A DNA stretch of 63,048 bases, the filler included, from Octopus bimaculoides (lineage: Eukaryota), in assembly GCF_001194135.2 (NCBI RefSeq). It is 3 parts of 3 records of this genome, joined end to end, with 100 filler letters (N's around TTAATTAATTAA, not from the genome) between each part and the next. Parts side by side here need not be neighbours in the genome. Positions count along the whole stretch, not along the records: positions 30,985 to 43,792 come from NC_068984.1; 2 more parts are not named here. The stretch is one strand, 5' to 3'. The position numbers and the translations under genes were made by a program. Positions within the stretch are counted from its first letter, which is position 1; each line of letters starts with the position of its first letter. Shown in pieces: positions 30,985-43,792 of this stretch. The notes under the pieces are model-generated. The model had not been told where the DNA came from and ran no database searches. It worked only from the letters and a program-made list of their open reading frames with translations.

Positions 30985-31815
30985 GAGCATACAGGTTCTT
31001 CATATCCTTGTCAAACCAATAAGAATGTATAAAAATTCCAAATGGTGCTTTGTTCGTGTTATAATGTCGCTGAAAGTTTTTCCAGAGGTAAGCTGAAATA
31101 TTGAGAACGGATTCAGGCTGTGAGCACATACCACCCATTGCACAAGGTTTCCCCTCGTTACCGTAAAACCGTATCAATGGTACTTCCCAAAATACAGGGA
31201 AGGGCTTGTTTGGTCGGGTTCCCGAAGAACAATATTTCTTCTCTGGAGGGTAGTTTAGCGTAAAAGGCCACACTGGTGGATCACTGTTGTACTCAAGAGA
31301 ACCGGTAAGCATCGAAGAATCCCAAGCGTAGCCAAGATTTCGCAAAACCTCGTATTGCGTATCACCACCAACTTCTAAAAATGGTACACGAAAACCTTTT
31401 ATTTTGTTATTAGGGATATAAGATAAATTTTACAATTTATCGGTTACGCCTTTCACTTCTTTTTCGTATTCGGTGTAGCTTAAATTTTTCCAATACTCTA
31501 TGGGATATTTATGCGTCATGGTGTGCGAAGCTATTTCGTGGCCTTGTTGGTATATTTCATTAGTTAAAGTATAACTGTTATCGACGTCTGTTATAAAGAA
31601 AGTGGATTTGATTGGACATCCGTTTGGGTTGTGCAGGTTCGATTGCTTCTCACGACCAAACAAGTAATGATAGTAATTAATATTTTTTTCGTTGATTGCA
31701 TCGTCAAAAGTCAACATAACTATTTGAGGTGTTTCACTAGATGCATGTCCACCAGGAATATTGATGCCAGGACAGCGACAGTCGGGAAGGCGGCACATAT
31801 TTGGATCACATCCAT
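30985..31815 (-). CDS. Chitin/polysaccharide deacetylase-like (CE4/NodB) catalytic exon with one in-frame TAA at 31430-31432; possibly an early pseudogene; 3' end lost in assembly join
   Basis: Acceptor (ttcttctaatttccag|) at 31817-31816. A single frame then reads GCDPNMCRLPDCRC..PQIVMLTFDD..NPNGCPIKSTFF..GHEIASHTMTH..GVTDKL*NLSYIP..KGFRVPFLEVGG..WDSSM..WPFTL..WEVP..APFGIFIHSYWF. ORFs 31430-31798 and 30929-31345 share one frame. Motifs TFDD, HxxxH, RxPF, DSS and the FxH motif are typical of animal chitin deacetylase-like proteins. Confidence 0.9.
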
Positions 31816-32330
31816 CTGGAAATTAGAAGAAAACGAAACAAGAGTCATACAGTTAAATTTGAAAATTTTTGTATGCACAGAAGTTATCTTTCTACATAAA
31901 ACACACAAATAAACAGACAGGCAAGCAGACCAAGAAACACACATGCATATAGGAATGGTGAACAATGAAAATGAGTGACTCAACACCGCTTTTAGTTGAT
32001 AAATATATTCTTCATTTGAGGATTAACAAATTTGTGGATTAAGTGAACTCTTGAAAATTGCGATATATTCCGCATGAAACCGTTGGTAGCATTGTTAATT
32101 CACAAATGAAGAATATATACATACGTACACACACATATATAAATACATACATACATGCATGCATGCATACATACATGCATGCATGCATACATACATGCAT
32201 ACATACATACGTACATATGTGTGGCTGTGTGGTAAGAAGTTGCTTCGCAACCACATGGTACTGAGTTCAGTCCCACCACGTGTCACCTTGCTTTTTTTGT
32301 TGAAAGTAGATCTTCTCCTTTTTATAATTA

Positions 32331-32543
32331 AGGCGGCGAGCTGGCAGAATCGTTAGCATGCTGGACCAAATGCTTAGCGTTATTTTTCCCGTCGCAACGT
32401 TCTGAGTTCAAATTCCGCCGGGGTCGACTTTGCCTTTCATCTTTTCGGGGTCGATAAATTAAGTACCAGAGAAACACTGGGGTCGATGTAATCGACTAGT
32501 CCCCTCTCCTCAAATTTCAGGCCTTATGCCTTTAGTAGAAAGG

Positions 32544-32590
<47 letters not shown>

Positions 32591-32610
32591 CATTATTATT
32601 ATTATTATTT
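32331..32610 (+). mobile_element. SINE family 2 (AGGCGGCGAGCTGGCAGAATCGTTAGC.. head, GGGGTCGAT motifs, (ATT)n tail)
   Basis: Homologous copies at about 9193-9392, 34465-34675, 45040-45160, 49318-49547, 50113-50340, 50345-50550, 50945-51095, 51810-51990, 53010-53180 and 57745-57945(-). Confidence 0.85.
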
Positions 32611-33959
32611 GAAGGCGGTGAGCCTTTGTTTTCTCGTGTTCCTTTCTGTTGAAGAGCACAGGCTCGAAACATAAAAGACTTTCTCACCTTCCCGAGCGTT
32701 AAACTAATACACCTGNNNNNNNNNNNNNNNNNNNNNNNNNNNNNNNNNNNNNNNNNNNNNNNNNNNNNNNNNNNNNNNNNNNNNNNNNNNNNNNNNNNNN
32801 NNNNNNNNNNNNNNNNNNNNNNNNNNNNNNNNNNNNNNNNNNNNNNNNNNNNNNNNNNNNNNNNNNNNNNNNNNNNNNNNNNNNNNNNNNNNNNNNNNNN
32901 NNNNNNNNNNNNNNNNNNNNNNNNNNNNNNNNNNNNNNNNNNNNNNNNNNNNNNNNNNNNNNNNNNNNNNNNNNNNNNNNNNNNNNNNNNNNNNNNNNNN
33001 NNNNNNNNNNNNNNNNNNNNNNNNNNNNNNNNNNNNNNNNNNNNNNNNNNNNNNNNNNNNNNNNNNNNNNNNNNNNNNNNNNNNNNNNNNNNNNNNNNNN
33101 NNNNNNNNNNNNNNNNNNNNNNNNNNNNNNNNNNNNNNNNNNNNNNNNNNNNNNNNNNNNNNNNNNNNNNNNNNNNNNNNNNNNNNNNNNNNNNNNNNNN
33201 NNNNNNNNNNNNNNNNNNNNNNNNNNNNNNNNNNNNNNNNNNNNNNNNNNNNNNNNNNNNNNNNNNNNNNNNNNNNNNNNNNNNNNNNNNNNNNNNNNNN
33301 NNNNNNNNNNNNNNNNNNNNNNNNNNNNNNNNNNNNNNNNNNNNNNNNNNNNNNNNNNNNNNNNNNNNNNNNNNNNNNNNNNNNNNNNNNNNNNNNNNNN
33401 NNNNNNNNNNNNNNNNNNNNNNNNNNNNNNNNNNNNNNNNNNNNNNNNNNNNNNNNNNNNNNNNNNNNNNNNNNNNNNNNNNNNNNNNNNNNNNNNNNNN
33501 NNNNNNNNNNNNNNNNNNNNNNNNNNNNNNNNNNNNNNNNNNNNNNNNNNNNNNNNNNNNNNNNNNNNNNNNNNNNNNNNNNNNNNNNNNNNNNNNNNNN
33601 NNNNNNNNNNNNNNNNNNNNNNNNNNNNNNNNNNNNNNNNNNNNNNNNNNNNNNNNNNNNNNNNNNNNNNNNNNNNNNNNNNNNNNNNNNNATATATATA
33701 TATATATATATATATATAATTCAAAACAGTTTGGTTTGGATTCCGTGCGACTTCAAGTTTCGTAAGTACCTAGCGGAGCATGTCTCCTCAAGGCTGGTGG
33801 AATATCCGAGCGAACCGAGAGGTGCAGGAAGTCCAAAATGGCTACCGGTAGATTGGCTGCAATTGGGCAGGGTGGATTACATGATGTCACAGGAGACAGT
33901 GTTATTGGTGACGACAGCGTGTCTGGATGGGGAATCAATGGAAGCTGTCAGCATATGTG

Positions 33960-34445
33960 CTTATGAACAGTGAAGCTGACCTGTATGACGGTACATACTT
34001 TACTTTTCTGTCCCAAACTACAGTATCCAGCCCGTTATGTGTGCCCTTGGTAGAAGTTTTGAAGTGAATGTTCCACTAATATCCCTTGTATTGATTATGT
34101 CTATATTTATATTCAGTAACAGGTGGTGTGTCTGTGGGGGTTATATTTACTCCAAGAAAACCTTTTTTTGGATGGCATTCTATAGTGTTTTAGTCACAAC
34201 GTCTTGTCGATTATGGAAGTTGTACCTTGATAATTTTAGGGGCAGCTGCGGATGACATGTTTAATGTGTTCTACAGAATTGTGACATAAACTTTTTGTTG
34301 CATCTCGCGCTTCGTGGGCTACAGAGTCGCTTTTGTTTATTGGGAATCTTGTAGCTATTTTCTGCCTTTGGATTGCATATCCATATCCTTCAAAGTGTGG
34401 TGCCATGTTTCGGTCAGTAATCCAAGAAAAGTTGCACTTCATGTC
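33960..34445 (-). mobile_element. Old RLE-type (R4/Dong-like) LINE fragment
   Basis: HFEGYGYAIQRQKIAT..LCHNSVEHIKHVIRSCP..RQDVVTKTL..WNIHFKTSTK..HNGLDTVVWD resembles the CCHC-RHD-endonuclease region of R4-clade ORFs; frameshifted. Confidence 0.6.
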
Positions 34446-34902
34446 AATATTACTGTCAACTTTAAGGCGACGAGCTAGCAGAATCGTTTGCACGCCAGAC
34501 AAAATACTTAGCGGCATTTCGTCTGTTTTTATGTCTCGAGTTCAAAGCCCGCAAAGGGCGATTTTGCCTTTCGGAGTCGATACAATAAATACCAGTTAAA
34601 CACTAGGGTCGATGTATCTGACAAACCACTCCCTCCACAATTTCAGGCCTTGTGCCTATGGTAGAAAGGATATTACTGTTATCTCCAAATGTATGTACGT
34701 ATGTATGTATGTATGTATGTATGTATGTATGTATGTATGTATGTACGTACGTACGTATGTATGTATGCATTCATGTGTGTATGTATGTATGTATGTATGT
34801 ATGTATGCGTGTGTGTATGTAGGTGTGTGTCAGTCTACTTGTCTGTCCTATACATCTTTACATAAACATTATGCACTCACACAAACACGCAAATACTCAC
34901 AG

Positions 34903-34976
<74 letters not shown>

Positions 34977-34991
34977 GTGTGTGTGTGTTTG

Positions 34992-35031
<40 letters not shown>

Positions 35032-37204
35032 AAGAGAGAGAAAAGAATGTACTGTTTTCACTCCGCTGAGCATGACATCAATCAAAGTGAATTTTTATTT
35101 ATACCAAATACACACCTAACCATTAAAATGTATTTCAACCATATTTCTGTGCTTCATGAATTCACTTAAAATTCCACGAAGTATTGAACACTATTTAAGC
35201 TCTTATTGTCGTGTGGTAACATTGTCCAATCGCTGAATGTTAAAAACACCTAAACAAATGAACCAGATCACGTTTACATACACACACTCTTTCAAGTAGC
35301 AACGTCACTATAACAATGAGCATCTATAGCAATATGAAGCCTTATACGGAATTTATAATTGGGTTTTATGTTAACTATATAACGTAAATTTAACCACTTC
35401 GGTTTAGCTTTTCGAATTTGGCTAAAGGGGAGTAACTCTATTCTGATCAATTCAATCTATTAAGAAATGGTGGAGGCGCAATGGCCCAGTGGTTAGGGCA
35501 GCGGATTCGCGGTCATAGGATCGCGGTTTCGATTCCCAGACCGGGCGTTGTGAGTGTTTATTGAGTGAAAACACCTAAAAAGCTCCACGAGGTTCCGGCA
35601 GGGGATGGTGGTGAACCCTGCTGTACTCTTTCACCACAACTTTCTCTCACACTTACTTCCTGTTTCTGTTGTGCCTGTAANNNNNNNNNNNNNNNNNNNN
35701 NNNNNNNNNNNNNNNNNNNNNNNNNNNNNNNNNNNNNNNNNNNNNNNNNNNNNNNNNNNNNNNNNNNNNNNNNNNNNNNNNNNGAAGTAGGAAAACCTTT
35801 TAAGAGCTTTTGGCTTCCAGGGGTCTTAATCTGGCCCTGCTCGAGACAGTAATGTCTAGAAGGACTTACTTTTACATTAGATGTTACCGAGTTCATGCTT
35901 TTCTTTTTTTTTGTTTTTATTTAATAAAGACATTTACGAGGCCCATACATTGAACTGGCGTCAACCAAAGATTGAAACAAGATATTCTGTTAACAAAAGA
36001 ATTTGCTTGTTTTTGTCCTCACACTGATCAATATTATTTATCTCCGACAGAAAATATTTGCAGTAGACCATCATTATATATATTTTTTATTGTCAGAGCA
36101 TTTAATCAACGTGATCACGAACCACACAAGCCTCTATTGATCTGTAACCTCTATTTTGTTTTCATTTGTCTGGTTTTAAGCGGTTTTTCTCTCGAGCAAA
36201 TATTTTGATTAAATTTTCTGCTCAGCCACTTAAAACGTTTACACATGTAACACTCGATCTCTCACCTTTCACCATATATTGTCTTTCTCACTTTTCCCCT
36301 CTCGTTTCTTTCTTTTCTTTCATTTGTCTCATATATTATTTCACAAGTCTTAACAAATACTAAACGATGTAATTATACTGTTAATGGTCATTTTATCCAC
36401 TTAACAATAAACAAAAGCTATTACATTCATCTGTTGTTTTCATTTATTTTTTAAAAAATTATACTGTATTTTATGAATTAGTAAACAGTTTCACCGCACT
36501 TCCGTGAACCTGGCTTACCAACATAATCCCATTACACCTGCCATTATTTGTCTTTTATCTCTTACTAGTCTCAGTCATTAGACTGCGGCCATGCTGGGGC
36601 TGGGTACTTATACTATCAGCCTCTTTTACCAAACCGCTAAGTTACGGGCAAACAGACAAAAAAATGCACACGTACACACACACATATATATATATATATA
36701 CGACGGGCATGTTTCAGCTTCCTTCCATCAAATCCACTCACAAGGTTTGGTCGGCCTGAGGATATACTAAAGACATTAATCCAAGGTGTTACGCTGTGGG
36801 ATTGAACCCGGGCCCATGAAATCGGGAAGCAAACTTTTTACTGCATAGCCACGATCGCGCCTGGGAGGAGAAATATTAAGAAAAGTACAACCAATCGGGT
36901 GATATAGTTCGGTAACTATGACCATTAAAATTGTTTTAATAAGTATTTAAGTAGTTGTGAGCGGATAAACTTTTGATCCAGGTTTTGGATCGCAGGACCA
37001 GGAGAGGACCCACTAATTTTTGATCCCGTGGGACATCATATGGAGGGAGAAGGGACTGATTCAGTACTTAGCCGGTACACATTAGAGCTGAGTTGGCTGC
37101 AACAACGTGAAATGAATTCTTTGCTCAAATATGTAATACACTGCCTGGTCAAGATATCGAACCTCGACCTTATGGTATGACCATTAGCCGAATACTCTCA
37201 CCAC

Positions 37205-37950
37205 TTGATTATGCACCTTCACTACTAATGCGTTTGTAGATGCTGCAGTCTCTGTTGTTGCTGCTGATGGTGTTACTGCTGTTTTCCCTACTCTTGCTGT
37301 TATTGGTGCTGCTGTTGCTGTTTTGACCGCTAGCACTGTTGGTGCTGCTGCTGTTTTTTGCTGACGTTGTTGTTGCTGTTGTGGTGATGATATAGGTAAA
37401 AGTGGTGTTCTTTGTCTCTTCTTCTTTGCTGTGGGTAGAAAGCCTTGAGGTGATTTGTACCATCTATAAGTGGCATCTCGGCTTTCTGCCCTTAACGGTC
37501 AAGTATAATTTTGTATCACGTGGCGGATTGATCAGGTCAGGGACTGTTTGATACTTTGGTCATCTGTTTGGATCAATAGCTCCATCTCTTCATCCAACCA
37601 ATTTTGTTTTTGCAACTTCTTGACCTGCAAAACTTGCTTTTGTCCTTTATGCAAAAAGAACAGCTGCCACCAACAAGAAGACGTCTATTTCTGGTGGCAC
37701 GTTGATAAGTTAGCATTAGGACCAATTTATCCCTGTTGATAAGGAATGCTTCCTAGCCTCATCATCTGTAGGGTATTTCACACCAACAATACTGTACTTT
37801 TCACGTTCCAGATTAGTTTGTGGCCCCTTTCAATCTTCTGCTGCTATTGTTGTTGTCGTTGGTATCACTGTTGTTGTTTCGGGTGACATTGGTTGAGTTA
37901 AAAGAGGGGGAGATGGTGAAGCTTTGTTGTAATGATGGGACGGCGGCATC
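37205..37950 (-). mobile_element. Decayed gag/ORF1-like relic with CCHC zinc knuckle and Ala/Thr-rich tail
   Basis: ..VPPEID..LYLTVKGRKPRC-H-L-(frameshift)-DGTNHLKAF(Y)P restores CX2CX4HX4C with one indel and one substitution; many stops. Confidence 0.5.
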
Positions 37951-38035
37951 AAAACACCTTTTCTAAACTCCAGTTTTACTCCTCTGATTATTTGCCGATG
38001 AATCCAACGCCATGTTTCGGTTCAACCTCACCACC

Positions 38036-38120
<85 letters not shown>

Positions 38121-38128
38121 TAGTAATG

Positions 38129-38177
<49 letters not shown>

Positions 38178-38193
38178 TAATAATAATAATAAT
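38036..38193. repeat. (AAT)n microsatellite; others at 4830-4887, 19247-19310, 21009-21035, 21151-21176, 32545-32610, 39026-39083, 49501-49547 and 50063-50111
   Basis: Direct inspection. Confidence 0.95.
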
Positions 38194-39026
38194 ATGCCAA
38201 CAACAAAATGAGACCATCGATCATGTTGTCTCCATGTGCAGTCTGCTTGCGCCTACAGAGTATCTCAACAGGCATGATAGAGCTACACAATATATTCACT
38301 GGGTAATATGCAAAAACCTGGACTTGCCCCATGNNNNNNNNNNNNNNNNNNNNNNNNNNNNNNNNNNNNNNNNNNNNNNNNNNNNNNNNNNNNNNNNNNN
38401 NNNNNNNNNNNNNNNNNNNNNNNNNNNNNNNNNNNNNNNNNNNNNNNNNNNNNNNNNNNNNNNNNNNNNNNNNNNNNNNNNNNNNNNNNNNNNNNNNNNN
38501 NNNNNNNNNNNNNNNNNNNNNNNNNNNNNNNNNNNNNNNNNNNNNNNNNNNNNNNNNNNNNNNNNNNNNNNNNNNNNNNNNNNNNNNNNNNNNNNNNNNN
38601 NNNNNNNNNNNNNNNNNNNNNNNNNNNNNNNNNNNNNNNNNNNNNNNNNNNNNNNNNNNNNNNNNNNNNNNNNNNNNNNNNNNNNNNNNNNNNNNNNNNN
38701 NNNNNNNNNNNNNNNNNNNNNNNNNNNNNNNNNNNNNNNNNNNNNNNNNNNNNNNNNNNNNNNNNNNNNNNNNNNNNNNNNNNNNNNNNNNNNNNNNNNN
38801 NNNNNNNNNNNNNNNNNNNNNNNNNNNNNNNNNNNNNNNNNNNNNNNNNNNNNNNNNNNNNNNNNNNNNNNNNNNNNNNNACATTCACTTGAACAAAACT
38901 GTACAAATCCAAATATATGGTACCCTAGGCATAACACCTACATGAACTTCTAAGTTGTTGTCTCTGAGGTCTCTGGGTGAGACTTGGATCCAACTTGTAC
39001 AAATGCAAAACAAAAGTCAAACATAA
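38194..39026 (+). mobile_element. RLE-type non-LTR retrotransposon (R4/Dong-like) 3' fragment between (AAT)n tracts; middle lies in a gap
   Basis: CQQQNETIDHVVSMC..RHDRATQYIHWVICK (CCHC remnant plus RHD motif) directly after (AAT)n; the putative 3' UTR ends in (AAT)n at about 39026. Confidence 0.75.
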
Positions 39027-39045
39027 AATAATAATAATAATAATA

Positions 39046-39083
<38 letters not shown>

Positions 39084-39084
39084 C

Positions 39085-39735
39085 ATCATGTACCATCCTG
39101 TGGCTGTAATTGTGGGAGAAAAGGTAACGATTCTTTGGGACTTTCCAGTGTATATTAAAGCTAATAAGCCAGATATTGTTGTGAAAGAGAAACAAAAAAA
39201 AAAAAAACAATAAAATCTGTTTATTGATTGACATAAGCATACCTTGTGATCATAATATTTCGGTAAAAGAATTTGATAAACTCAGAAAAATATAAAGATT
39301 TGCTGATTGAAATCGAAAAAATGTGGCATATCAAGACGCTTACAATACCAGTGGTTGTAGGAGTTCTTGGAATAATCAAAAAGGGAGCTGAAAATTATTT
39401 GAGGATGATCCCTCGCTTACCATCCATGCAGGAAGTGCAAAAGATTGCCTTAACTGGTTCGTCACACGTACTGAGAAGAGCATTATCGCTGTGAATTTTC
39501 TTTCCTTTCCCTACTCTTGTCTTCTTTTTCTCCATTGTTTTCTTTTTTCCTTCATTCTATTATCTTCTTCCTCTTTTTTCTATCACATGACTTTGTAAAT
39601 GAACAATCTGGTGTGTTTATTTTTATGGCTTACCAATATATATACAGTGAGTTTCTTTGCCCGAGGTGTTGGGAAGACACACAACAAGAAATGGAAGCAG
39701 AATTGAAAGAAGATAATGACAGTAATAATAACAGT
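39085..39735 (+). mobile_element. Second RLE-type (R4/Dong-like) 3' fragment with restriction-like endonuclease domain
   Basis: ILWDFPV..KPDIVV..LLID(I)SIP..EFDKL..KYKDL..EIEKMW..IPVVVGVLG..LQKIAL-like..VLRRALSL*, a PD-(D/E)xK RLE tail; begins right after (AAT)n. Confidence 0.82.
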
Positions 39736-40452
39736 TGTGTTGGTATATAAAACAGTTTGTATCATAGGTTACCTTCACAGATGATTCCGTTTGTATTCTT
39801 TCGAAGTCGCATAACATTTTGCAACCCCATCCTCCATAAAAGAAAAAGTAAAAACACTATGAAATATCTGTAGAATGTTTTAACTCAGGATCTACGAGCG
39901 AGTAGCTCATTATTTGAAGCAGTTAGCTATTTCAACCCTTTCCTAGTTACTTGCAGTATGTTACATAGTTGTTCTGTATAGTTACACAAGTACGTCTACA
40001 AACACGATTTCTAAGAAGCCATACCTACGATGACGTTTATAAGTGAGAACGGTTGCAATGGCAACACTATTTGCATTGATTGTATTGGGAAAGGCAACAG
40101 TCAAATAGAGACGTCATTCTTTCGACCTTCATTGCAGTCAAATTATTGACAAATATATAAAAGTTTGAGGTCAGTACAGGTAAAATGAAATTCGTAGCAA
40201 GGACGAAGATATTCGTGTTTCTATTAAACTAAGGTATTATAAAATCCTGAATTGTGCTTGCTTAGTAAATAGCTATTTATCAAGGCCTGAGATTGTGTGA
40301 TGAAGTAAAACAACTTCTGGATAGAGTCGTATTAGTAATTATTTACGCCAGTCCCACTACGTGTCACCTTGGAGGAATGTTTTCTACTATAGCCTCGGGC
40401 CGACTAAAGCCTTATGAGTGGATTTGGCTGACAGAAACTGAAAGACGGCCGA

Positions 40453-40496
<44 letters not shown>

Positions 40497-41209
40497 NNNN
40501 NNNNNNNNNNNNNNNNNNNNNNNNNNNNNNNNNNNNNNNNNNNNNNNNNNNNNNNNNNNTTGTCTTTTATTATTAGTCACAATGAGGATATTTAAACCCT
40601 TTATAGGGATACTTTTTATCCAAGATACACTGGTTTAATATATTATACTTTAAAGAGATATTTCTTCAATGAATATATTATATAAAATATCGTAAAATAT
40701 CAAATAATATTTTCGAGTTAGAAAACAGAGAGATCTAATGGAAATAAATTAATTTATTAAATTAATCAACACATTCACTTACAATTGTCTCAATTCACAA
40801 ACAAAATTAAAATTACAAAACATATATAAATATATAATTTTGCATTTTAAATACCTTGTATAGAAAACCATCAGGGTATCCAAAGGACAATACACGGAAT
40901 ACTTTATGATCCGTTTGGAATACTCAGAAAATATAGACATGTTTATTATGTGTGTGTGTGCACATGCGTTAAAATTATTGCTTTTATTTTTAATTCAATA
41001 ATGATAATAATAATCTTGAATAATGGATTATAGTATATAAGAGTAAAGTAATACAATGAATAAAGGAAAGTAAAAGCGAAATAAAATTTATGTTCATGGA
41101 ATAAAATAAAATAAAAGTGAAACACTAAACCGGATATAACGTTTGGCATCCCTGACGTCTTAGAGGCAGTAAACGAAATTAAACACAATTCAGCAATAAG
41201 CCCTTATTG

Positions 41210-42784
41210 GTTCCCTGTTTGTATCCTGAAGGTTTGTCGAAACCAACTTGCATCTCCTCTTGCTAATCTGCGGAGGAACTCACTGGATGCTGGCTATATT
41301 CCTGAAAACTTTGCCCTAGTCTGTTGTCCAAGCTTTCAAAAAGCGAAGCAAGTTCCTTGCAGTGATCTACCGCCCGATCTCACTCACCTCTCATATCATC
41401 AAGGTATTTGAGAGGGTGGTGAGATCACGAATAACCCACTTTCTTGAAAGCAACAAACTGTTGAATCCCAACCAACATAGGTTCCGTAATGAAAAGAACC
41501 GCCTAACGCAGCTACGGCATCACTTTGATGACATTTCGAGGGATTTAGGAGAGGGCTCCTACACCGATGTCACCTATCTTGATTTCAGCAAGGCCTTTCA
41601 CAGAGTTGATCATAAGATTCTCTTGAAAAAAAAAATATCCAGCATTGGTGTCTCTGGAAAGTTACAACAATGGATCAAGTGTTTCCTGAGAGACAGAACC
41701 CAACACTTTGTAGTCGAAGGAGTAAAATCAAACCCAGCCATAGTCAGTGGTAGTGTTTCACAAGGCACTGTGTTGGACCCACTTCTTTTCATCATCTACA
41801 TTAATGGCATTACTGACATCATCAAGCACAGTAACATAAGATTCTTTGCAGATGGTTCCAAGATCCAGAAGGTCACCAATGAAGTGGGTGACCGGACATG
41901 CCTTCAGTCAGATTTATTGGCTGTCATTCAATGGGCTGAAAAGAGCAATATGCTGCTGAACGGGGACAAATTTGAGTTAATCCACTTCGGAAAAGGGGAT
42001 ACTCTGAAACTCCTATACTCTCTTCCCCCAGGTGAAACTCTCATGGCATCCAGTATCATCAGAGACTTGGGAGTGATTGTGGACAACAACATAAGCTGGG
42101 CCGCTCATATAAGCAACAAAGTTGGCATGGTCCGCAGAACGTGTTCCTGGACCTTCTGAACTTTGCAGGCGAGAGATATCCACACCATTATCCTTCACTT
42201 CTTCAATTTTGCCCGACCCCATCTTGAATACAGTTGTCCACTGTGGTCTCCCCACACAAAACAAAGTATCATGAAAGTTGAAGCGTCTCAAACTTCAATT
42301 AAGAAAAAGACAGATAGCATGATAGGCCTTGACTACTGGGGTCGACTAGAAAAGCTCAAGCTTAATTCTCTCCAATGTCGCCATGAGCGTAACATCATCG
42401 GCATGGTGTGGAAAACATTTCATAAGCATTGCTCAAATGATGTTGGCATCGCCTTTAAGATACACCCAAGGCTTGGGCCCCGTGCTATCCATCTACAACA
42501 TAAACCACTCTCGCATCGCATAACAACAGTACGACTCAATTATTTCACTTCAATCGGCCTCGCTCTTCTTAGCATTATGCCAAAACACATTAAAGCTGAA
42601 AGAGACTCCATAAAGTTCAAGAAATCCCGGATAACCTCCTACACCCGGATATGTCTCCGTAAACAATAACTCTCTGCTTGAGTGAGCCATGTCCGAATCC
42701 TGATCTGAATGACTTCTCCAGGTGGTGGTATTAAGTTAGACATGGCTTGGGCCAATACTGGCCGAAACCTATCAAAGTATCAAA

Positions 42785-42786
<2 letters not shown>
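41210..42786 (+). mobile_element. 5'-truncated CR1-like LINE (RT domain, 3' UTR, (TATCAAAG)2 tail), inactive
   Basis: YRPISLTS..LDFSKAFHRVDH..QGTVLDPLLF..FADG..RPHLEYSCPLWSP. ORFs 41362-42159 and 42163-42669 are in the same frame, separated by one TGA. The catalytic FADD has become FADG. Confidence 0.9.
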
Positions 42787-42842
<56 letters not shown>

Positions 42843-43792
42843 NNNNNNNNNNNNNNNNNNNNNNNNNNNNNNNNNNNNNNNNNNNNNNNNNNNNNNNNNN
42901 NNNNNNNNNNNNNNNNNNNNNNNNNNNNNNNNNNNNNNNNNNNNNNNNNNNNNNNNNNNNNNNNNNNNNNNNNNNNNNNNNNNNNNNNNNNNNNNNNNNN
43001 NNNNNNNNNNNNNNNNNNNNNNNNNNNNNNNNNNNNNNNNNNNNNNNNNNNNNNNNNNNNNNNNNNNNNNNNNNNNNNNNNNNNNNNNNNNNNNNNNNNN
43101 NNNNNNNNNNNNNNNNNNNNNNNNNNNNNNNNNNNNNNNNNNNNNNNNNNNNNNNNNNNNNNNNNNNNNNNNNNNNNNNNATATATATAATTGAGAGAAA
43201 AAAAACACAATTATTGAATTCATCCATGAAAATCCACAATCACATATAGAAAAAATTTATAAGTAAACACACTAAAAAGACCTATAATAAAAATCAAAAA
43301 CGTACAAAGAAATAAATATTAAACTAATTATTATCATAATTTATTATAATATATTATATATGATGCCTTTTACGTGCCACCGGAACGTGTGGCAGTCAGC
43401 GGTATTGGCATCGGCCACGCTCAAATGGTGTTTTATAGATGCCACCGGCACGGGTGCCAGTCAAGTGGCACTAGCATCGGCCATGGCAATGATTTCACTC
43501 GGTTCAACAGGTTTTCACAAGACCGGCATATCGCCCAGCAATTGAATGGTGCTTTTAAATGGGCCAGTTATGTGACACTGGCATCAGCCATGACTATGAT
43601 CTAACTTGGCTTGCCGACTCTTCTCAAGCACAACATTTCTCCAAAGGTCTCGGTCGCTTGTCATTGCCTCTGTGAGGCCCAACATTTGAAGGTCATGCTT
43701 CACCACCTCATCCCATGTTTTCCTGGGTATATTAGAGGAAAAAGGCCCAGTGAACTAAACCCCTCATATTCTTTATATATATATATATATAT

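Follow-up and report, generated by a model that had tools for sequence, protein, structure and literature searches.

Does the single in-frame TAA in an otherwise well-preserved chitin deacetylase (CDA) exon of Octopus bimaculoides mark the loss of a gene, an mRNA that is recoded, or an error in the assembly? The stretch of DNA analysed here (the window; 63,048 nucleotides, filler included) joins three parts of the assembly GCF_001194135.2, and the exon lies at one edge of its 12.8-kb piece from NC_068984.1 (positions 30,985 to 43,792). All window coordinates given below count along the whole stretch.

The coding frame of this exon is on the minus strand, and the plus strand of 30985-31815 contains many stops. 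Translation of the minus strand from 31813 to 30985 revealed 276 codons with exactly one stop, a count that covers the exon part present in the piece, which contains neither exon 1 nor the C-terminal 68 codons. The translated sequence reads GCDPNMCRLPDCRCPG...TFDD...HTMTH...VTDKL*NLSYIPNNKIKGFRVPF...WDSSM...CSSGTRPNKPFPVFWEVP...CAMGGMC...FGIFIHSYWFDKDMKNLYA. The segment represents the 5' 831 nt of the terminal coding exon (30985..31815, minus strand), the 3' end of which is cut at the edge of the piece. The frame at 30985 is accordingly ended by this edge and not by biology; in the orthologues it continues for 68 more codons to ...KPWQC*. The exon has its 5' end at 31815, in phase 1, with a G of the upstream exon and AT forming the split codon. 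It is preceded by a splice acceptor (tttccag, 31816..31822, minus strand) that is identical in the window, in O. sinensis and in an outgroup octopod. Upstream, the frame is closed by a TAA three codons before the exon start, within the polypyrimidine tract/acceptor. An earlier reading of the sequence alone (the initial annotation) had described a frame with a single stop carrying the motifs TFDD, HTMTH, FRVPF, DSSM, FIH, CSSGTRP, PVFWEVP and CAMGGMC; all of them were found, on the minus strand.

By homology far above chance, the exon encodes beyond doubt a CE4/NodB chitin deacetylase catalytic domain. Its translation matched the Polysacc_deac_1 profile (PF01522) with 46.4 bits against a cut-off of 23.1 (E=4.7e-12), and a protein homology search with the same query detected 38 database proteins at E<=1e-10, the best of them at E=2e-148. 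The only solved structures matched were those of Bombyx mori BmCDA8 (5Z34, E=2.5e-52) and BmCDA1 (5ZNS/5ZNT, E=3.3e-48). All five CE4 motifs are intact in the sequence, at columns that are invariant among 37 homologues. Motif 1, TFDD (31699..31710, minus strand; exon codons 35-38), comprises the catalytic base and a metal-binding Asp, and its F, D and D are invariant in 35/35 homologues. The H[ST]xxH motif provides the metal-binding His pair; in the window this motif 2 reads HTMTH (31511..31525, minus strand; codons 97-101), with both His present in 36/36 homologues, and it is the last motif before the stop. Downstream of the stop follow motif 3, FRVPF (RxP[FY]; 31379..31393, minus strand), with R and P in 37/37 homologues, the DS[ST] motif, which is found as WDSSM at the conserved column, and motif 5, FIH (31025..31033, minus strand), with the His in 35/35 homologues. 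The His of this hxH motif is the catalytic acid. The frame is not continuous over the whole CE4 domain: the TAA, at codon 128, falls between motifs 2 and 3. A chitin-binding (CBM14) module is absent from the gene, whose architecture and best structural relative suggest that it resembles the insect group V CDAs, which consist of the catalytic domain only. A literature search on octopus chitin deacetylases found nothing specific.

The O. sinensis protein annotated as "chitin deacetylase 7-like" (XP_029635687.1; UniRef A0A6P7SBI7; 344 aa; P0039) is the orthologue of the window gene. It was found in the 90%-identity cluster of the best database match, P0001, which shows 86% identity. P0001 represents three or more Logan assemblies (SRR11869384, SRR11869390, SRR11869391) of an octopod more distant than O. 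sinensis, which served as the outgroup; its contigs contain the same intron and acceptor and are therefore genomic DNA. The O. sinensis locus (L004) lies on CM016862.1 at ~119.25-119.30 Mb. Its coding sequence consists of two blocks, with residues 1-24 in exon 1 and residues 25-344 in a single terminal exon. Exon 1 ends CCAATTG|GTGAGT, in phase 1, as the initial annotation had predicted for the missing signal-peptide exon, and is followed by an intron 1 of 46.6 kb. The peptide encoded by exon 1 (MRMMEHNIHFFLVLLSAFSQSLPI) would, by eye, be a typical signal peptide. The terminal exon (L004:56649-57479) aligned with the window exon at 93% amino-acid and 95.2% nucleotide identity, without indels. 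The two genes have in common the two-coding-exon structure, the acceptor, the phase, a collinear intron and the paralogue-specific Cys-to-Arg and Asp-to-Gly exchanges. Unlike the window copy, XP_029635687.1 has TCA (Ser153) at the site of the stop, a frame open over its 344 residues, and PGLWEVP with Gly.

The 12.8-kb window piece is collinear throughout with the 3' part of the O. sinensis locus. The exon and proximal intron showed 92.2% identity over 1321 nt, and more intron blocks at window positions 35788-36565, 39062-39642 and 39635-40485 are 89-90% identical. The intron identity of 89.7-91.4% between window and O. sinensis equals the dS of 0.10, and orthologous DNA of O. bimaculoides and O. 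sinensis from the same CDA cluster is 88-90.5% identical. A processed (retrocopied) pseudogene is ruled out, as the acceptor and the intron are retained and collinear with the O. sinensis locus. A search of the window piece with the DNA and the peptide of O. sinensis exon 1 revealed no match; synteny with O. sinensis would place the signal-peptide exon ~23 kb past the end of the piece. No overlap was found between the piece and the O. bimaculoides P0013 locus. In a collection of 5.8 billion proteins, no protein of the window species matched the gene, as might be expected if the gene were not annotated as coding. The 122-aa truncated ORF had no record in an exact look-up, and neither the homology search nor the cluster contained a same-species protein of >90% identity.

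The remainder of the piece (31823..43792, minus strand) is the 3' part of intron 1 and contains repeats, assembly gaps and a LINE reverse-transcriptase fragment; its collinear blocks with L004:34280-56648 show 80-92% identity. The reverse-transcriptase fragment belongs to a non-LTR retrotransposon at window positions 41362-42669 (plus strand), where a 265-aa ORF matched the reverse transcriptase profile PF00078 (E=6.8e-22); the next ORF, of 168 aa, has no Pfam match. This fragment is ~81% identical to its counterpart in the O. sinensis intron (L004:34280-35176), so that, at this identity and at the orthologous place, either the insertion predates the species split or a repeat family is shared. 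An interspersed repeat of ~170-250 nt (window 32319-32610 and 34462-34682) is present in dozens of copies throughout the 67-kb O. sinensis locus, at 75-92% identity. It resembles a SINE of octopus; an ARAGORN scan of these SINE-like repeats found no tRNA. Microsatellites of the types (ATAC)n, (ATT)n, (ATGT)n, (AT)n, (GA)n and (TAA)n are dense (32113-32217, 32544-32609, 34689-34821, 34903-35041, 38037-38194, 39023-39083, 40456-40496 and 42800-42842). Several of them adjoin N runs, and simple repeats are the probable location of the assembly gaps. The proximal intron measures ~3.5 kb in the window (32290-35788, with N gaps unsized) versus ~16 kb in O. sinensis (L004:40127-56160), a difference that reflects repeat turnover or a large indel, unless the assembly gaps are under-sized.

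The premature stop itself is located at 31430..31432 (minus strand; TTA on the plus strand). It interrupts VTDKL*NLSYIP at exon codon 128, or residue 153 in O. sinensis numbering. At the same site, O. sinensis and the outgroup, the latter in three independent genomic contigs (L001-L003), have TCA (Ser), and the frames of O. sinensis and of all three contigs are open to the natural stop KPWQC*. The comparison with orthologues, which the initial annotation had proposed as a check, thus returned an intact frame with TCA both in O. sinensis and in the more distant octopod. Parsimony places a single C-to-A transversion, TCA to TAA, on the branch leading to the window. Relative to an intact orthologue whose synteny holds, TCA to TAA is a disabling lesion. 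Across 37 homologues the column is occupied by polar or small residues, most often Ser (9), Ala (8) and Asn (6); that the position is usually polar had been stated from the sequence alone, and Ser is the residue of both orthologues.

Alignment of the three exons over 829 nt revealed 0 indels; in the adjoining intron, 490 columns contain 3 gap openings. The exons differ at 40 positions between window and O. sinensis, at 81 between window and outgroup and at 68 between O. sinensis and outgroup, and the pairwise dN/dS of window and outgroup is 0.23. Polarised with the outgroup, the changes comprise 7 synonymous, 17 nonsynonymous and 1 nonsense on the window branch, 7 synonymous, 5 nonsynonymous and 0 nonsense on the O. 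sinensis branch, and 31 synonymous, 22 nonsynonymous and 0 nonsense on the outgroup branch plus stem. The window branch therefore stands against its sister with 18 versus 5 nonsynonymous changes (nonsense included; p=0.011) at 7 versus 7 synonymous ones. Total exon changes on the two branches are 25 versus 12 (p=0.047), whereas the adjoining intron has 14.5 versus 13.5; equal in the intron and unequal in the exon, the branches carry an excess that neither a generally raised rate nor faulty base calling would explain. Three-point estimates of branch omega are 0.60 for the window, 0.14 for O. sinensis and 0.15 for the outgroup. A GY94-type maximum likelihood (ML) model on the three-taxon tree, with 275 codons, three taxa and one long outgroup branch as the basis of the selection statistics, gave a whole-exon omega of 0.67 for the window branch against a background of 0.18 (LRT p=0.010), with ~0.18 for the branch of the O. 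sinensis orthologue; omega=1 was not rejected for the window branch (p=0.41).

The two halves of the exon differ in their ratio of nonsynonymous to synonymous changes (Fisher p=0.006), in the direction opposite to that predicted for a truncating stop. Downstream of the stop (148 codons), the window branch shows a ratio of 6:7 and an omega of 0.245, close to the background of 0.22, and neutrality is rejected (p=0.0135). Upstream (127 codons), the ratio is 11:0 and omega lies at the upper bound, above the background (p<1e-4) and nominally >1 (p=0.029). For the zero synonymous changes upstream, where 3.6 were expected (P=0.027), there is no explanation but chance. The initial annotation had named dN/dS values near 1 as the mark of an ordinary pseudogene and had pointed to both sides of the stop; downstream the value is not near 1 but that of a constrained sequence, and upstream it is above the background. 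Judged from this distribution, the burst of N-terminal replacements predates the stop or is independent of it. A long-standing stop would have freed the downstream half, yet this half is still constrained, so that the stop is judged to be young relative to a branch of ~4.8% neutral divergence.

Apart from the stop, three exchanges at usually conserved positions had been remarked upon in the initial annotation, and only one of them proved to be particular to the window. In CSSGTRP, an Arg (31229-31231) takes the place of a Cys that is found in 33/37 homologues, and in CAMGGMC the second Gly (31130-31132) replaces an Asp present in 34/35 homologues; both Arg and Gly occur in all three octopods. 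In PVFWEVP, the Gly of the P-G-x-W-E-V-P motif is changed to Val (GGT to GTA; 31193..31195, minus strand). This Gly is found in 30/34 homologues and in both orthologues, and the Val is private to the window. The Arg and Gly substitutions are common to three species under purifying selection and are hence traits of the paralogue, not decay. Their maintenance at an omega of ~0.18 suggests a functional CDA paralogue with altered disulfide or active-site surroundings, and this paralogue-wide loss of the Cys and the Asp may hold more biochemical interest than the stop codon.

Taken from the sequence comparisons, the best explanation is probably a young pseudogene or a still-segregating null allele that arose from a single recent stop mutation. 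The ancestral gene would have been a secreted, catalytic-domain-only chitin deacetylase, one member of a tandem CDA cluster, in which one C-to-A change in the window lineage would have turned Ser153 (TCA) into TAA. The product would be a polypeptide of ~152 residues without the RxPF, DSS and catalytic-His motifs. According to the established CE4 mechanism, a product without motifs 3-5 is inactive; the ~152-residue product would thus be unable to deacetylate chitin, and the stop would amount to a loss of function. For a stop in the terminal exon, EJC-dependent nonsense-mediated decay is not expected, and the mRNA would probably be spared it. The mutation would be recent, in view of the signature of purifying selection downstream of the stop on the window branch and of an exon without indels. 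Before or around the time of the stop, the protein, mainly in its N-terminal half, would have been taking replacements 3-4 times faster than its orthologues, which would fit a gene turning dispensable. We regard this as an ordinary loss rather than a case of recoding, and the finding as unremarkable. The initial annotation had offered a young pseudogene, a null allele or a consensus error, and its inference agrees with the TCA of two intact orthologues, with the lack of indels and with the downstream omega.

An older pseudogene, in which constraint was lost more than half-way back to the O. sinensis split and neutral drift followed, is unlikely. Its predictions agree with a whole-exon omega on the window branch that is indistinguishable from 1 (p=0.41 as above; binomial p=0.33), with the Gly to Val exchange at a conserved Gly, and with the number of stops: neutral drift over 60-100% of the branch would produce 1.1-1.8 nonsense changes in the exon, and the one observed is what such drift predicts. 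The 1.5-2.5 indels expected alongside are absent, with P(0 indels) = 0.08 for neutrality over the whole branch and 0.22 over 60% of it. None of the five catalytic motifs is damaged, the exon has changed by 3.0% versus 4.65% for the adjoining intron on the same branch, and the rejection of neutrality downstream of the stop speaks directly against such drift; the omega test of the separate halves makes a fully neutral older pseudogene less likely than the whole-exon test does. The downstream constraint would also be seen in an intact functional gene with an assembly or consensus error, or with a collapse of near-identical tandem copies, and the lesion is a single base in an otherwise perfect frame, in a gene that belongs to a tandem family and in a piece of a gap-rich draft assembly with N runs. 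This reading is nevertheless quite improbable. Window-specific differences are not in excess in the adjoining intron, errors cannot account for all 17 private amino-acid replacements, and, with 4.6% of substitutions creating a stop, a random error at this place is by our own estimate far rarer than loss-of-function variants in tandem families. A consensus error is thus less likely than the initial annotation had allowed, given the excess of amino-acid replacements in the window lineage.

Coleoids edit their mRNAs extensively, and constraint is still apparent downstream of the stop, as would be expected if the gene were functional through recoding of the UAA, whether by translational readthrough or by A-to-I editing that converts both adenosines and yields UGG (Trp). 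We consider such a rescue extremely improbable, in agreement with the initial annotation, which had called it a long shot. Ser is ancestral at this position, and the four commonest residues of the column in the 37 homologues (Ser, Ala, Asn and Val) do not include Trp; moreover, two adjacent edits would be required. The 200 nt around the stop showed no dsRNA signal, as they fold no better than shuffled sequences (z=-1.34; 21/200 shuffles equalled or surpassed them), and a small AU hairpin, which has the UAA in its loop, is also formed by the O. sinensis sequence, there with UCA. In the window sequence the UAA is followed by A, and UAA followed by A is an efficient termination context. Nor is the stop hidden in a mini-intron: it is spanned by a single GT..AG pair, whose excision, at 52 nt and thus not a multiple of 3, would shift the frame. 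A mini-intron is also contradicted by the orthologues, in which the stretch is coding, and by the alignments with the Bombyx CDAs, which are gapless across the stop. As a further alternative, the split between upstream replacements and downstream constraint could be real biology and not noise, reflecting positive selection on a full-length protein that is made by editing or readthrough of the UAA, or that is encoded by other alleles if the UAA is only one allele. This is very improbable; if true, the locus would hold an adaptively evolving gut or cuticle chitin deacetylase and not a dying gene.

The reading as a recent loss or null allele can be set beside related CDAs. BmCDA8 (PDB 5Z34), a group V insect chitin deacetylase with the catalytic domain only, resembles the window gene in its CE4 motifs and in consisting of a signal peptide, predicted for the octopus gene from the exon 1 peptide of O. 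sinensis, and a catalytic domain without CBM14 or LDLa; the match spans query residues 2-267. The identity between BmCDA8 and the octopus gene is only roughly 40%. Both the Asp (CSMVDGC) and the second Cys (CiippC) are retained in BmCDA8, an active enzyme; the window copy, in contrast, is cut short by the stop. Octopus CDA paralogues are found in the same chromosome cluster, namely the XP isoforms P0003 and P0004 in O. sinensis and P0005 and P0013 in O. bimaculoides. Like the window gene they have the catalytic domain in one large terminal exon, but they are only 45-47% identical to it and retain the conserved Cys and Asp. P0003 and P0005, both at 47% identity, carry in addition an N-terminal CBM14 (PF01607), which the window gene lacks.

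In O. sinensis, P0003, another PF01522 gene and the orthologue P0039 lie within ~150 kb, with P0003 ~70 kb from the orthologue. The same chromosome record (CM016862.1) contains a decayed CDA catalytic-domain exon (L006:14353-15251) with at least 5 in-frame stops, a frameshift and loss of the RxP motif. This copy is situated inside a large intron of the gene annotated as 'chitin deacetylase 7-like' isoform X1/X2 (the P0003 locus). It belongs to the same cluster as the window gene and is likewise disabled, but it is much older, whereas the window copy has a single stop and intact motifs. The presence of a decayed copy in the O. sinensis cluster indicates that gene birth and death are normal in the CDA family.

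The window would thus record a lineage-specific recent loss, or a null allele, of one catalytic-domain-only CDA, with little import beyond annotation. For the annotation, the locus merits the label of a pseudogene or low-quality locus and not that of a coding gene. For the chitin biology of cephalopods, which involves the beak, radula, stylets and gut lining, it points to redundancy among the CDA paralogues.
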